From Hormiphora californensis (Eukaryota > Animalia > Ctenophora), in the NCBI GenBank assembly GCA_020137815.1, contig CM035351.1, positions 6,696,001-6,760,000 of the forward strand: a stretch of DNA of 64,000 nt, given 5' to 3'. The stretch's first letter is position 1. Each line of letters begins with the position of its first letter. The notes under the pieces were generated by a model. That model worked only from the letters and a program-made list of their open reading frames with translations, did no database searches and was not told where the DNA came from. Position numbers and translations under genes: made by a program. Below are positions 42,081 to 63,400 of this stretch, one piece after another.

Positions 42081-51858
<9,778 letters not shown>

Positions 51859-54908: not shown

Positions 54909-57549
54909 ATGGCAATAGTAATGATATTTAGGCGTAGCAAAAGTACACCAGAAACAAGAGAGACATTTCGGTAGGTTTTAACACCAACCACTTCACCCTA
55001 GTGTTAAGTTTGTCATGCCTAAACCCCGCTCAGTTTCACCGTCCCGGGCCTTAATTGAATCAATTCATGGACAGTAAGAAACAAATGTTTTATGTCGTAA
55101 AAATTGCGTGAAGCATACATGTGCATATTGTCAGGATATTTGTCAGTCATCGTACTATGTTCCATGTGTGAAATATCGGGTTGTTGTAGCCAATTATTCA
55201 TCCCAGTTTACCCGGTAAAGACTAAAGATTGATTCTGAAACTTTCATCACTGCAGGCCACCAGTTGATTCCAATCTGGAGGAGAGTTCCAGTAGTTTAGC
55301 AGTTCCTGGGTCAGAAGGTGCAAAACCAGATGCAGATGGAAAGAAGAAGTAGGTCCTTAGTCTGGTCACATCTGTTTTTAGTTCTCTCTTGGCATCGAGA
55401 AATAGAGACAGTTTCTCACTTGACAGTTTCCGTTTTTTTCTGTAATTATAGTGCACCAGATTGGAAATCTGTTTTCTCTCCTCAGCTTTTTCTCTCACTC
55501 TTTCACTATTTGTCTCATTACATCTCTCCCACCAAATTAACCCTCTCTCTCTCCCTCTCTGCAGTAGTAAATTCGCCATTGCAAGTTGGTTGGGGAAGAA
55601 GGCGAAGGATAAGGAAGGGGATGGTGCTGGTTCCTCCCCCGCTGACAGGTAGTTTCAATTATCACACTTCTCTCCCACCCCCATATTTTGGCACCTCCAT
55701 GGCAATACTTATGACATACAGCTATCTCATGATCATCCCTGATTATCACACGAAATCCAGAGAGTTAGAAATCCAGGGGGATTTAAAAGGCTAGGCCACT
55801 GTCCTGGGATGTCAGTTTTTACCATCACCACACCTGACAACATCTGATCATGTCGACTGCAACAACTTTCCTCTCTCTGATATCTGCCGTGCTTTTCCTG
55901 GCCCTTGGCGCTCCGCCCGCCAGTAGAAGTAACGAGGAAGATGGACTGTACTATGTCCCCGGATTAAGCGAGGAAGACGGTCTATACTACGTTCCTGGGG
56001 AAAAGAGAGATGCTGACTCTGCAGGACTTTACTATGTTCCCGGAGAAAAGAGAGAGGCAGACTCTGCAGGACTTTACTATGTTCCCGGAGAAAAGAGAGA
56101 GGCGGACTCTGCAGGACTTTACTATGTTCCCGGAGAAAAGAGAGAGGCAGACTCTGCAGGACTTTACTACGTTCCCGGAGAAAAGAGGGAGGCAGATTCT
56201 GCAGGACTTTACTACGTTCCCGGAGAAAAGAGAGAGGCAGACTCTGCAGGACTTTACTACGTTCCCGGAGAAAAGAGAGAGGCTGACTCTGCAGGACTTT
56301 ACTACGTTCCCGGAGAAAAGAGAGAGGCTGACTCTGCAGGACTTTACTACGTTCCCGGAGAAAAGAGAGAGGCAGACTCTGCAGGACTTTACTACGTTCC
56401 CGGAGAAAAGAGAGAGGCAGACTCTGCAGGACTTTACTACGTTCCCGGAGAAAAGAGAGAGGCGGACTCTGCAGGACTTTACTACGTTCCCGGAGAAAAG
56501 AGGGAGGCAGACTCTGCAGGACTTTACTACGTTCCCGGAGAAAAGAGAGAGGCGGACTCTGCAGGACTTTACTACGTTCCCGGAGAAAAGAGAGAGGCTG
56601 ACTCTGCAGGACTTTACTACGTTCCCGGAGAAAAGAGGGAGGCAGATTCTGCAGGACTTTACTATGTTCCCGGAGAAAAGAGAGAGGCTGACTCTGCAGG
56701 ACTTTACTACGTTCCCGGAGAAAAGAGAGAGGCTGACTCTGCAGGACTTTACTACGTTCCCGGAGAAAAGAGAGAGGCGGACTCTGCAGGACTTTACTAC
56801 GTTCCCGGAGAAAAGAGAGAGGCTGACTCTGCAGGACTTTACTATGTTCCCGGAGAAAAGAGAGAGGCTGACTCTGCAGGACTTTACTATGTTCCCGGAG
56901 AAAAGAGAGAGGCGGACTCTGAAGACTCTCAAGAAAGTTCAGATGCGCTGTACTATGTACCGGGATAAAAAGCGAGAGAAAGAGCTAGGGAGTAGCGATT
57001 CCCCATCATTATATCCTTCATTCTACAGTGATTTTATATTTTGAAGTGTATTTACATTGCAGCAACAAATCAGGACTTGTTTATGTTTTGGTTAGCGCTA
57101 AATTTACCGGGTGTTAAAGATTGTTCACACTGGCCCATTACAACAACTCATATGATACACACACTCACAAGATATACCACATGAATCTCACGTGGACAAT
57201 GGGGATAATGTGGTAGTTCCCCACTCACAAAGATGATATATCAGATCAATGATTCCACAGATATGTATCCTGAATCTATAGTCTATACCTGTTTCAGCAA
57301 ATCAAAGTCCAAGTCCAAGTTGAGATCTATGATTAAAAGTGTGGTTTACGAGGACACAACCCGGGGAGGTCCGACCAACATACCGACGGGTCCGATAAAC
57401 AGAGGTCCCTTGTTTGGTGTAGCGCTGAAAGATGCTGTTGAGAGGAGCCAGTGCCTTGATGGACTGCCCCTGTGTAGAGTCTTCCAGGACTGTATCATGT
57501 ACCTCGAAACATTTGGTATGTTTGTATGGTGTCTATCTGTCTGTCTGTG

Positions 57550-57590
<41 letters not shown>

Positions 57591-59587
57591 GGAGTGAATG
57601 TTGAGCTAGCCGTGCATAATACCCACGGTATACCCTCCTCGACTAAATATCCCATCCTCATTGTAGGACTGCAAAAGGAAGGAATCTATCGAGTACCCGG
57701 ATTCCGAACTAAAATGGATATCATGAAACGAACATTTAATAAAGGTACAGGATATTTTCATATTTCACTTCTAACCTGCTTTGAATCTCTCTTATACAAG
57801 AACCGACCGAAACAGATAAACAACCAATCAGAACTCGTTATTTAGGTCACGTGACTGGTTATCAGCCAATCAGGGACCAGTATTTCCTGATTTGGTCGGT
57901 ACCTGGCAACAAATCTCTAACCAGCTCTCTCACTCCTCCAAAACCAGGTGATGCAGTAAAGCTATCTGAGTACGACCCAATGACGGTTGCTATGTTGTTG
58001 AAACTGTACCTCAGGGAACTCCCTGAACCCCTTCTTACTAGACAGCTGGGAGCCAGTTTTGAACAAACCATTCGTAAGTTGTGTATTACTGCGTCTACCA
58101 ATACAACTATTTAGATGTTTTGAAGCACACTTTAGCTGTATCTGGTATCTGTTAGTCAAATATGACTGAGGTTATCCTCCAGTGATTGATCGTTATTCAA
58201 TTTGGAAGATAGCACACTGTATTGCAAATATCAGGCGCCCTCTGTTTGACACAAACCAACTGGCATGATTCGCGGTGTTGTTGTGTTGTACAGCAGGACA
58301 CCCGATACACTGCCAATTGCTGTAATTCTGTAGGGTGTGGCATGAGAAACAAGGAAGATCCCCTTCCCTTCCTTGCTCTTACATCTTGGTATAGTAATTA
58401 GTTATTGATACCACTGCCGCGAAACAGGCCCTTCGTTCGGTTTGTTTCGCGGCTCAAAACCAGATTAGTACACTATTTTAACCACCTTTATATTTCAGAG
58501 TCGGATGAATCTAATGAGCATATAGCAGTGCTCCGGAGGCGGCTGAGGGATCTGCCTGTAGAGAACTATGCCACTCTGGCCTGGCTGTGTCTGCACATGA
58601 GTCACGTTGCCAAACATGTACGTGTTGAACAGACTTACTGGATGTTATTATATGACTTGTTTCTTACTAACCTAGTCCCTGTATATGGTCCCTACCACCT
58701 GTAAATAATACTACCCCTTTCTCAGGAAAAGTACAACAAGATGAACCTATCGAATCTGATAATTGTCCTCTCACCCACCCTCCTCGTCTCAACCACCCTG
58801 CTCCGTTGTCTCTGTGAACATGCCTCCACCCTTTTCCCTGGTGTAGAGCTCAACCCCAACACTCCAATCCCTGAGTATGATGAAAGTGAGGATCACACGG
58901 TCGCTGAGAAAGTTGCACCTCAGCAATCCGCCAAGGCGAACTCAGTTCGACTCGAGCTGACTCAGATGTATCTATACATGGTGGCCAGGAATGACACGCT
59001 TGTGTTTATGAAGGAGCAGCTGAAAACGAAACTTAAGGAAGAACGGAAAAAGCTGTTAGAGGTCCAGAAAACTTTAGATGGGACAAGGGAAAATGGTGAG
59101 AGGTTGGCACAGCAGTCGTCTACTGTGTATTTACTGCAGTTATAATGACGTTTCTAAATCCTAGAATAGCGAAATTTGGACTTGAGACTTTCTATCTTGA
59201 CCACCACGGTTGAGTAATATTTTTTCTTCCCTCTTAGGTCCCTCTCCTGCGATCGAATCCACGGATTCTCCCGATACCCTGAGTGAAAAACTTAAAGAGC
59301 TGGAGCAGCAACAAGAGATATCTGAGGTAAAGATAAGAATGGGCACTCGATCAGCGGTTTGGGCCGGTTTCATTCGTGCTTAGATTATAGATTCTAATTT
59401 CTATGAATCATAAAATCTACTGTTCTTTGCTAATACCGTTTTGACTGCAGCATGTCTCTCTCTCTGACATGCACTCTTCCAATTACAGGGGGAGAAACTA
59501 CACTTGTTCAACCTAATTATGGCGAGTGCGATGGAGTGTGTGGACCTGCGGAGTGAAGTGAGGGCCCGTCAAATGGAGATGAGGTAG
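54909..59587 (+). CDS. RALBP1: RalA-binding protein 1 (RLIP76)-like RhoGAP
   Basis: In-frame exons 54909-54970, ~55257-55349, ~55565-55648, then 57298 onward. Motifs PLFGVALKDAVERS..DGLPL..VFQDCI.YLE.FGLQKEGIYRVPG (arginine finger), LLKLYLRELPEPLL, LPVENYATLAWL..H, NKMNLSNL.IVLSPTL, then coiled coil ending ECVDLRSEVR. An alternative end near 59817 is possible; first exon tentative. Confidence 0.85.
55850..56968 (+). CDS. Putative neuropeptide precursor (LYYVP-amide; 23 peptide copies), intronless CDS nested in a RALBP1 intron
   Basis: 20-aa hydrophobic signal peptide; 20 tandem [E/D]ADSAGLYYVPGEKR units plus two N-terminal EEDGLYYVPG and a terminal SDALYYVPG-stop. Dibasic KR sites; nucleotide variation among the 45-nt units is synonymous apart from the D/E at the start of the first unit. 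Confidence 0.9.
   Translation: MSTATTFLSLISAVLFLALGAPPASRSNEEDGLYYVPGLSEEDGLYYVPGEKRDADSAGLYYVPGEKREADSAGLYYVPGEKREADSAGLYYVPGEKREADSAGLYYVPGEKREADSAGLYYVPGEKREADSAGLYYVPGEKREADSAGLYYVPGEKREADSAGLYYVPGEKREADSAGLYYVPGEKREADSAGLYYVPGEKREADSAGLYYVPGEKREADSAGLYYVPGEKREADSAGLYYVPGEKREADSAGLYYVPGEKREADSAGLYYVPGEKREADSAGLYYVPGEKREADSAGLYYVPGEKREADSAGLYYVPGEKREADSAGLYYVPGEKREADSAGLYYVPGEKREADSEDSQESSDALYYVPG
57530..57590. repeat. (GTCT)n microsatellite, intronic
   Basis: Directly visible. Confidence 0.9.
57798..57904. mobile_element. ~105-bp intronic MITE-like repeat
   Basis: Ends AAGAACCGACCGAA...TTTGGTCGGTACCT are inverted; core CCAATCAGAACTCGTTATTTAGGTCACGTGACTGGTTATCAGCCAATCAG. From memory it resembles a very abundant Pleurobrachia repeat (unverified). 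Confidence 0.65.
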
Positions 59588-60468: not shown

Positions 60469-63400
60469 TCAGTTGGCATTACAGAACCGTGCCACGCTGG
60501 CTAGGATGTGATCCTCACTGTACACATTGCACAACTTGGCCAGGGTATTGAGGTACTTGGTGATATAGGGATGATCCTGGATCCTGGTGTGACAGGCGGA
60601 GAAGAACCCTGACATCACGTTCTTGTTGCACTCACCGTGGTTAATCACCAGGGGGACCTGAGAGAGTGAGAGAGGGTTAGGTTTTAGTCAGCCTAGAGTG
60701 GTCAGGACTAGGGGGCGAGGGCACCTGAGATGGAGAGAGAGAGGGGGTTAGCCAACCTATTATAGTGGTCAGGACTGGGGCACGTCTGAGCTGAGTTGAA
60801 GAGAGGGGGTTAGCCAACCTAGTGTGGTCAGGACTGAGGGCACCTGAGATGGAGAGAGGGAGTCCGTGACTTAAAGATATGGGTCATATTTCAGCTCGGC
60901 TTCAATTGCTAATCAACCGACTGGTTTCCTTATCACTTATCAGTTCTGTATCATATATCTTTTTTCTGCTGTTTGGGGTCCGCTAATGAGGTACCTAGTG
61001 AGGTCACGTGATATCTGAACAGCCTAGTACATAAGGCGAGGACCAGGTACCCGTATATATCATAACTATTGCTGCAGTAGTATAATATTGCTATGCTCAG
61101 TTGAACTCGATTTACAACTGCCAGTATAAGGGTGTCCTAGTAGTTTTAGCTGAACTCCGTTGTTGATCAGGCGCCTGCAGGCTTGACATTCTTTGTGTTC
61201 ACATTGTATCCACTACTATATGAAACAGTCTTGTTCTGTTTAGGAGGAAACTGTATCCCTTTTTCCAATTCGTGTATCCTTGTCTCCAAATCTATCCCCT
61301 CTCTCCCTTCCTTTCTAGCAAGTCAGTATGTCCGATATACAAGATATGAACTGTCTGGCGCCGCCGACCCCATCTGAGCGCACTGAATCAAATTGGGGTA
61401 TGGGCGCCATCATACAGGATATAAAGAAAGATTCTGTTCTCTCGACAATGCACCCCGAGGATTGGCTTATTTCATTGGAAAAGATGAAGCTGAAGTCGAT
61501 GCGGGAGAAACATGACTTGATGGGTGAGGATATGATTCATGATATCCGATATCAAGGATGCGGAGGAGGCGTTGAAGAAGAGGATAGAGGAGAGGAGAGG
61601 CCAGCAAGGAACAGGGGAGATGACGAGGTAGCTGACTGCAGAGGAGAAGTTGAAGATAAATGTGCAGGCCATTAATCGAAATGGTGCTTGGTGAATACAA
61701 TGTGCCACTACCCGAATACCAACAATTGTCTGAATGTGAGATTTGTGGACATTATGGGCATATCAAGGAGATTTGTGTTTATAATAGGCATCGAGTTGAT
61801 AAACTTGCACTGTAGATATTAATAGTTCCGAATTGTGGCGAAGACATGGACATTGGCAGTGTTTAGGAGCAGTGTGCAGTATTTTCAATTATCAATTTCC
61901 CCCGCGTGATTCTTAATTCTTATACTTGGTAATGACACTTGTTTGTCTGTCTTTTACACGGATGATATTTGGTTTCGAGTGGCACTGGTATGGGTCTGCC
62001 AGCTGCCTAATAATTTGATGAAGTCGTGTATGGTATTGGGTAGATAGGAGGTTGTCTCACCTGTTTCAGACTGGACACAGCCTCAACACCACCTAGGACA
62101 TCATCGGCTATGGCATTGATGGCCTTCTCTACATACCGCTCCTTGTCTTCATGGAACTGGGGAAGAATTAGGAGCTGAGTCAGTTAAAGTCGATTTGTTA
62201 GATTTCATCCTCTCTCTGTGGGACACCGAATACTCGTCTTATGTTATACAGACCCCGATCTAATACCACCATGTCCCTCCTCCTACATACCTTGATTTGT
62301 CGTTTCAGGTCCTCAGCTGCTTCCTCATCGTTTTCCTTCTCCAGCTTCCTCTTCAGCCAATCCACCATGACATCCTGACTCTGGATACTCTTCATGTTCC
62401 TCTCTCCACTCATCTCCATCTTCCACCTCTTCTCCCCGGGCGTGCCCAGGAAGGTTGAAAGTGGCTCGTTGGGGATAGTGGTCAAATCACCGTAGAGCAT
62501 AGCATGGGATTCTGTTGTCATCTTTTTGACGATCTGGTACTGTTGCCCAACAGTCTCTTTGTCCCACCCCGGGGCAATAGTTTCAGTGTTGTTCATCCAG
62601 TTCAGGGACCAGCAATCACCTGAAATAGGGACCATGTTAGAGGATGGAGAAGGGGGTGAAGAAGGGAATGGAAGTTCAGTGATATTAAATATGGATGAGA
62701 GAAGGCCAAAACTCAGCTGAACCGCGTCCTGAGAGACCTACCAAGATAAGTATTTAGGTCCTCGTCCATAACACAAGCATATGAGCTTTCGTCAGCGTTA
62801 GCAGCGGTGTGAGCGGTGATTCCCATCTTGTCGGACATTTTGGTGAACATGGAGCCAGAGTAGCATGCCTCAATGTACATCAACATCTGCTTATACCTGC
62901 ACAGAGGGGAGGGAATGGGGTAGTACTCTGTACTGCAGCTGCAGTGGAGTGTAGTGGGAAGTGTAGTGGGAAGTGTAGTGGGAAGTGTAGTGGGAAGTGT
63001 AGTGGGAAGTGTAGTGGGAAGTGTAGTGCGACTGGAAAGAACAGTTTGCATCATTGAATTTAAAATGTTAATTGGGTGTTAAATGTTAATTAACTGTGTT
63101 ATACCTGCCTCCCTCAAACATTTGGTTCATGGTAGAATCCAGGTCGACCTTGTTCAGTTCACCAGATGGGAATGCCAGGATACCAGGACCACCATGGTCA
63201 ACAAAGTTAACAAAGATGATGTCATCCTTGGTACTCCTCACTACCTTCCTACTTCCCTGTGTAGTGGTGTGTTTAGCTACAAGGTGCAGTGTATAACAGC
63301 TAGCTAACAGCTCAACTCTCAGGGCTGTCCAGTACCCTATCAGTCGAGTCCTGGTATTTATGAGAACAGAATTGGTGTCCGGACATGTCCTCCGTATCAG

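Follow-up and report, generated by a model that had tools for sequence, protein, structure and literature searches.

Whether the neurons of ctenophores and of other animals have a common origin is debated largely on the basis of their transmitters, and to our knowledge the ctenophore peptides proven so far number no more than about a dozen, nearly all of them from lobate species. The peptides of Bolinopsis mikado were named as amidated from mass spectrometry, and acidic residues are major cleavage sites, besides basic ones, in ctenophores and in Nematostella (PMC9525235). The residues that follow the Gly in these precursors are varied: the NVRa precursor reads ..PVNVRGER, with a Gly-Glu-Arg context (Supplementary Data 1), LNSa reads ..LNSGQEE and predicted copies in its precursor read ..RKGEELEKR, the TFQa precursor reads ..SGTFQG/LAEDD, the NVFa precursor has the context GKEKR, and the VWYa, RWFa and PARa precursors end in Gly-stop; on the N-terminal side, VWYa is cut after acidic residues (AEEE/ARVYK..) (PMC9525235). 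Here we describe a candidate from the ctenophore Hormiphora californensis, an open reading frame (ORF) at 55850..56968 (+) with 23 copies of the motif LYYVPG. It lies in a window of 64,000 nucleotides (nt), by which we mean the whole stretch of DNA analyzed (assembly GCA_020137815.1, contig CM035351.1, positions 6,696,001 to 6,760,000 of the forward strand; plain coordinates below are positions in the window). On balance, we favor the view that this single-exon gene is a secretory multi-copy precursor of amidated peptides in a pleurobrachiid ctenophore.

The ORF encodes 372 amino acids (aa) and a stop codon in one exon. An in-frame TGA at 55835 lies 15 nt before its ATG, which is the first ATG after that stop, and the hydrophobic N-terminus begins right there. 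Residues 1-20 (MSTATTFLSLISAVLFLALG, 55850..55909 (+)) are predicted by a hydropathy heuristic to form a signal peptide with cleavage at A-L-G/A. Its hydrophobic core spans residues 7-19, the 9-residue hydropathy window reaches a maximum of 2.9 over residues 10-19, and the A-x-G/A cleavage-type site after Gly20 is followed by APPASRS. A single-sequence AF2 model places a helix at residues 3-15 of the precursor; with a pLDDT of 54.8, the model is uninformative on its fold.

LYYVPG occurs exactly 23 times in the precursor, at a spacing of 12, then 15 (20 times) and then 22 residues, and a Gly follows LYYVP in 23/23 copies. Two divergent N-terminal copies (NEED-GLYYVPG-LSEED-GLYYVPG, 55943..55999 (+), from the copy alignment) precede twenty units of the form EKR-[E/D]AD-SAGLYYVPG with a closing EKR (56000..56908 (+), from the repeat analysis). 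A divergent acidic spacer (EADSEDSQESSD, 56909..56944 (+)) then leads to the last copy, ALYYVPG, with TAA immediately after it (56945..56968 (+)). Nineteen units are identical as LYYVPGEKREADSAG and one carries RDADSAG, SAGLYYVPG being present in 20 copies; at the DNA level, the array found by Tandem Repeats Finder runs over 55985-56921 with a period of 45 bp, 20.8 copies, 96% matches and zero indels. KR is present in 21 units, and an Asp precedes every core (EED/G, [E/D]AD/SAG and SSD/A). Neither divergent N-terminal copy has a dibasic site before it. The residues after the core Gly are Glu-Lys-Arg in 21 copies and Leu-Ser-Glu-Glu-Asp in one, the first of the divergent pair, while the last copy runs directly into the stop. 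Such a layout, in which the core is conserved and the acidic spacers vary, with KR and a terminal Gly, matches what would be expected of a multi-copy peptide precursor.

The openness of the array proves nothing by itself, because the 45-bp array is open in three frames (the ATG frame and two others) and other minisatellites in the genome are likewise open in several frames. Among the 19 identical units, DNA variation is found in four columns only, TAT/TAC, AGA/AGG, GCA/GCG/GCT and GAC/GAT, which are exactly the silent alternatives that an earlier note on this DNA had claimed. In the ATG frame, each of the five distinct base changes in these columns is silent (5/5), and in each other open frame they are non-silent; the single other frame in which the five are silent is a closed reverse frame, with about two stops in each unit. 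As 32 of the 135 single-base changes possible in the unit are silent, the probability that all five would be so by chance is about 0.002. Over the whole array, 7/7 variable columns are at codon position 3 ((1/3)^7 = 5e-4), whereas in a control minisatellite of the same genome (C10:7484144-7487974, 42 bp, 20.7 copies, with two open reverse frames) the 6 variable columns are split 1/3/2 over the three phases. LYYVPG itself is encoded by five different 18-mers, with third-base differences in five of the six codons and no amino-acid change, and these synonymous spellings extend to the divergent outer copies, whose spacers differ in protein. An environmental RNA contig departs from the genome at three further sites, 56164 T>G (CTT>CTG), 56188 G>A (AGG>AGA) and 56194 A>T (GCA>GCT), all of them silent.

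Purifying selection thus acts on the precursor frame, and what it constrains is the core through its Gly. The silent changes, the codon-phase bias and the unbiased control array bear out the claim of a selected protein repeat rather than a satellite, and the signal-like N-terminus fits a protein of secreted type. The anatomy given in the same note was accurate as well: its count of 23 LYYVPG motifs, 20 of them in near-identical 15-aa units, is exactly right, and the copy alignment shows, as stated there, three divergent copies that vary the spacers and keep LYYVPG, with the last copy ending Gly-stop. Adjoining the control minisatellite there is a 239-aa ORF whose many long hydrophobic stretches may mark a membrane protein.

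A selected and secreted repeat could also be a tyrosine-rich protein that is left uncut, with a structural, matrix or adhesive role, such as in the secretions of tentacles or colloblasts. The composition past the signal peptide (Tyr 13%, Gly 13% and Pro 7%) would suit such a protein, as would the 20 near-identical tandem units, which resemble those of many adhesive proteins, and the AF2 model puts a 3-residue strand on each LYY at the low confidence given above. We nevertheless consider an uncut protein unlikely. Every regular unit carries KR beside an acidic spacer, the divergent copies keep only the 6-residue core while their spacers change freely, and the C-terminus falls exactly on a Gly. 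The top unrelated matches in the HMMER search described below are other KR-spaced multi-copy precursors, and a literature search on adhesive repeat proteins of colloblasts gave no relevant result.

If the precursor is cut, the residues that follow the Gly decide the nature of the products. With G-E-K-R in 21 copies, a standard convertase and carboxypeptidase would leave ...PGE, with no exposed Gly, and the product would therefore be non-amidated. The argument of the earlier note, that Gly plus KR supplies the amide donor, fails as written, since 21/23 copies read G-E-K-R. Amidation at G-E-K-R therefore needs acidic-site cleavage as documented in ctenophores and cnidarians, and Bolinopsis offers a precedent for 3/3 C-terminal contexts of the precursor: G-E-K-R (NVRa), G-L-S-E-E-D (TFQa) and G-stop (VWYa/RWFa/PARa). 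N-terminally, the Asp ahead of each core has its counterpart in the cleavage of VWYa after acidic residues. In a genome profile search, a PHM-type Cu2_monooxygen domain (PF01082, 58.9 bits, over the cut-off) was found at C4:7693098-7693349, and the convertase P domain (PF01483) at six places in at least four loci, all over the cut-off. Genes of both enzyme types are thus present in the species.

From these elements, we infer the following sequence of events, in which cleavage, amidation, release and signaling are all proposed from the gene. The signal peptide (residues 1-20) would direct the precursor into the secretory pathway, where a furin/PC-type convertase would cleave after each Lys-Arg. 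N-terminal trimming would then proceed to just past the Asp before every core, the residues after the Gly would be removed by acidic-site cleavage of the ctenophore/cnidarian type, and PHM/PAL would turn the exposed Gly into a C-terminal prolinamide. After storage in secretory vesicles, the products would act as signaling peptides released by a neuronal or other secretory cell. The most likely products would be SAGLYYVPamide (20 copies), GLYYVPamide (two copies) and ALYYVPamide (one copy), and forms extended at the N-terminus, for example (p)EADSAGLYYVPamide, are possible. The calculated [M+H]+ values are 868.456 for SAGLYYVP-NH2, 710.387 for GLYYVP-NH2, 724.403 for ALYYVP-NH2 and 1183.563 for EADSAGLYYVP-NH2 (1165.552 with pyroGlu), compared with 1370.611 for a non-amidated EADSAGLYYVPGE-OH. 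Of the mature product proposed earlier, (G)LYYVP-NH2, the amidated core is still favored; because of the acidic N-terminal rule, SAGLYYVPamide or a longer form is more likely than (G)LYYVPamide to be dominant. The amidated reading as a whole is likewise retained in part, with the acidic-site precedents and the PHM-type and convertase genes in its favor and the Gly that does not directly precede KR counting against it. Legumains cleave after Asn or Asp, and this class may be worth considering for Asp-side trimming of ctenophore precursors. A legumain-like Peptidase_C13 gene lies in the window, with exons at 62198-62635 and 62713-63054 (-) (64 bits for one exon); its proximity is probably coincidental.

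Cleavage might instead be confined to dibasic sites, with a cut after KR and trimming of K and R yielding the non-amidated EADSAGLYYVPGE, possibly with an N-terminal pyroglutamate. The site KR/E..GE/KR is the sole canonical one in the 20 units, and a non-amidated cnidarian peptide, a Hydra regulator, does exist. Against this stand the first two copies, which have no preceding dibasic site, and the last copy, where the Gly-stop ending is that of the amidated VWYa, RWFa and PARa. The block that is conserved stops, moreover, exactly at the Gly in 23/23 copies, whether E, L or a stop comes next, and in Bolinopsis NVRa amidation occurs in a G-E-R context. We regard dibasic-only processing as quite improbable, and return to the amidated precursor in what follows.

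The precursor gene is nested, on the same strand, in an intron of a RALBP1-like gene. The upstream host exon (55565..55648 (+), ..GKKAKDKEGDGAGSSPAD) ends GACAG/GTAG, and the intron (55649..57297 (+), GT..AG, 1649 nt) holds the whole precursor gene. The downstream exon (57298..57515 (+), CAG/C.. ..GPLFGVALKDAVERS..ETFG/GTATGT) carries the start of a RhoGAP domain; its best match among solved structures is 2mbg, RalA-binding protein 1 (E = 1.5e-5), which is also the best match of a later host exon (E = 1.2e-7). The two exons that flank the intron join in frame without a stop, further host exons match RhoGAP (PF00620), and the host exons reach about 59100 (+). The host gene model uses GT-AG boundaries and frame continuity only, and its exons were searched singly. 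Genes nested in introns are reported to number in the hundreds in H. californensis, with parallel cases among them, and at least 56% of the Iso-Seq reads to carry a spliced leader (PMC8527503). The published leader has 534 copies in the genome, compared with 0 for a reversed control. Given the hundreds of nested genes and the common spliced leader, the arrangement is therefore ordinary for this genome.

Candidate control elements were located in the host intron by pattern scan and by inspection of the sequence. A TATA-like TTTAAAA (55782..55788 (+)), 62-68 nt before the ATG, is a candidate core promoter, and an AG at 55814-55815 (+) is a candidate acceptor for spliced-leader addition. An ATTAAA at 57332..57337 (+) lies inside the next host exon. 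Just past that exon there is a (TGTC)n microsatellite of 15.5 copies (57530-57591), which translates as CLSVCLSV... Elsewhere in the window, about 8 kb upstream, a weak match to the rhodopsin family of G-protein-coupled receptors (7tm_1, 20.9 bits, below the cut-off) is found in an ORF fragment at 47665-47928 (+), and an exon of the NIF/CTD-small-phosphatase type at 50136-50432 (-) (PF03031, 30.2 bits).

Public RNA data give a hint of transcription, not proof. In a run search, 16 RNA runs from 10 studies contain 4-10% of the sampled words, and exact contigs of the array, 37-130 nt long, are present in 3/3 marine RNA libraries that were placed on the locus, from three studies. After correction of array depth for k-mer multiplicity, run X1 has a depth of 15.9 in the array compared with 2.0 and 6.2 in the flanks. 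In runs X2 and X5, the corrected array depth is about 1 or less, and their empty flanks are therefore uninformative. The flank contigs of X1 cover 57074-57222 and 57286-57400+, and the second continues, by the coordinates of its record, to about 57582, over the host exon and both intron borders; that library therefore holds unspliced RNA or DNA. The contig at 57074-57222 departs from the genome in two indels, an insertion of 1 nt after 57146 and a deletion of 2 nt at 57191, neither of them a multiple of three, as expected of an untranslated region or intron. None of the contigs in the three libraries placed covers the unique 5' part or any mRNA end, and run X18, which is labeled with the species, has no contig at the locus.

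It is very improbable that the array is non-coding, a minisatellite in the intron of the RALBP1-like gene that is open behind an ATG by chance: the same-strand intron, the three open frames, the other multi-frame-open minisatellites in the genome and the unmapped transcript ends would all fit, but 7/7 variable columns fall at codon position 3 (5e-4) with an unbiased control array, LYYVPG has five synonymous spellings with the outer copies included, a hydrophobic signal-like N-terminus starts at the first ATG, and the stop comes directly past the last Gly.

Searches for relatives of the precursor were made in protein, genome and metagenome collections. No match was obtained in a word-indexed protein library for the full-length precursor or its first 110 aa, and the exact protein is absent from the protein cluster collection. 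A HMMER search of 1.84 billion representatives gave 184 matches (E<=0.001), and YYVPG occurs in none of the best 150 of these 184; as relatives, the matches were rejected as other KR-spaced repeats and low complexity, driven by a periodic KR/acidic composition. Protein matches within the same genome are unrelated minisatellites open in several frames. The YYVPG-coding pattern occurs in the genome at 23 sites of the locus and as about 30 scattered singles, compared with 22 for the reversed-pattern control; this genome pattern, with its singles near the control level, did not reveal a paralogue or second locus. In metagenome contigs of the Joint Genome Institute (JGI) and the European Nucleotide Archive (ENA), a two-motif DNA pattern was matched at 22 loci, and the five inspected, all multi-match ones included, held no homologue, being unrelated satellites or lacking an in-frame repeat. 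Pfam hits to Ribosomal_L30_N, Vac_ImportDeg and BLOC1S3 are repeat artefacts, as no stretch passes alone, and the nearest clusters in the ESM Atlas, with scores of at most 0.83, are leads only.

The literature was equally silent within the range covered. LYYVPG, YYVPG and the amide spellings occur in none of the searchable papers, the Pleurobrachia prohormone list (72 predicted) lying outside that search. YYV and YVPG are absent from the supplements of PMC9525235 and 10.1101/2021.03.31.437758, in which the control strings RVWYG and GNPWG were found. The peptide, which the earlier note had not recognized as a member of any described family, thus has neither a library match nor its motif in the searchable papers. 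The precursor may be present as an unnamed gene model in the species annotation. It would represent a family of ctenophore amidated-peptide precursors for which no relative was detected, with more copies than is usual in the phylum.

Among known ctenophore precursors, an orthologue of the ctenophore-specific NVRa type is present at C13:252054-255086 (-), with a signal exon (MIRLVFVLLVISLTVTNTK) and a C-terminus that ends ..CVAGLQCADYGHVALCY-stop; of the sequences printed in PMC9525235, that of Pleurobrachia is the closest to it. Its signal exon and Cys-rich C-terminus are conserved. Where Pleurobrachia has the site LLNAAGEE, the Hormiphora orthologue has LLNTDED and consequently lacks the Gly amide donor. 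A pattern search of the genome matched the NVRa C-terminus and found none of the conserved VWYa and NPWa core patterns.

Several points weigh against the view that the gene is an amidated-peptide precursor. The predicted signal peptide was judged on hydropathy alone. A Glu follows the Gly in 21 copies and would have to be removed for the Gly to be exposed. The array units are 96-100% identical, and the selection test is accordingly based on few mutations. The RNA-library contigs, which cover the array and, in one run, the downstream flank only, include no full-length or end-mapped transcript, and with the gene in a same-strand intron, DNA carry-over or host pre-mRNA is a possible source of them. 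From the stop codon to 57700, the only AATAAA/ATTAAA is the one at 57332, with none earlier downstream. No orthologue was found in the protein libraries or the metagenome scan, ctenophore transcriptomes not being directly covered, and there is therefore no cross-species conservation to draw on. We regard the gene as a testable candidate peptide precursor, for which the label "neuropeptide" is itself a candidate.

Only tentatively can it be proposed that the LYYVPamides are new, lineage-restricted ctenophore neuropeptides, made from the highest-copy precursor known to us in the phylum and expressed from their own mRNA by way of an intronic promoter or trans-splicing. If true, the LYYVPamide family would point to a sizeable unrecognized peptidergic repertoire in cydippid ctenophores. 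A 23-copy cydippid candidate with a chromosome-scale genome supplies exact masses, an epitope and a probe for direct tests. It would also be a clear Gly-Glu-basic case, useful to train precursor predictors that now assume Gly-basic sites.

Compared with known systems, one likeness is to the yeast alpha-factor precursor (MF_alpha), which shares tandem copies split by KR and an acidic X-Ala spacer (KR-EA-). Among the nearest ESM-Atlas clusters, no other secreted-peptide family is named; MF_alpha scores 0.80 there, a value below 0.9 being a lead only. Only the first dipeptide of the Hormiphora spacer, Glu-Ala, fits X-Ala trimming, alpha-factor is not amidated, and the two are not homologous. The thyrotropin-releasing hormone (TRH) precursor, with its multi-copy KR-QHPG-KR units, canonical G-K/R-R sites and a 3-residue product, is likewise multi-copy and yields a prolinamide from a Pro-Gly site; its canonical sites and 3-residue product are unlike those of the LYYVPG precursor, and no homology is implied. 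The cnidarian Antho-RFamide/LWamide precursors also hold many near-identical copies, with acidic N-terminal processing and a Gly donor. In these a basic residue usually comes right after the Gly, in contrast to the intervening Glu here, and they belong to another phylum and have no sequence relation to the LYYVPG precursor. The precursors of Bolinopsis mikado/Mnemiopsis (NVFa/NIFa, LNSa, NVRa, TFQa, VWYa, RWFa and PARa) share with it a signal peptide, short cores that end in a Gly donor and acidic spacers, as well as mixed basic/acidic flanking sites and the G-E-basic, G-L-acidic and G-stop contexts, and those of NVFa/NIFa and LNSa are likewise multi-copy; in sequence, they show no similarity to it. 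The Bolinopsis peptides have been seen by mass spectrometry, whereas the LYYVPG product is predicted from the gene and would end in Pro-amide, an ending also found in Nematostella PRPa (PMC9525235). The Hormiphora precursor finally stands apart in its copy number, with 23 copies compared with at most about ten, by our own count, in the precursors printed in PMC9525235.

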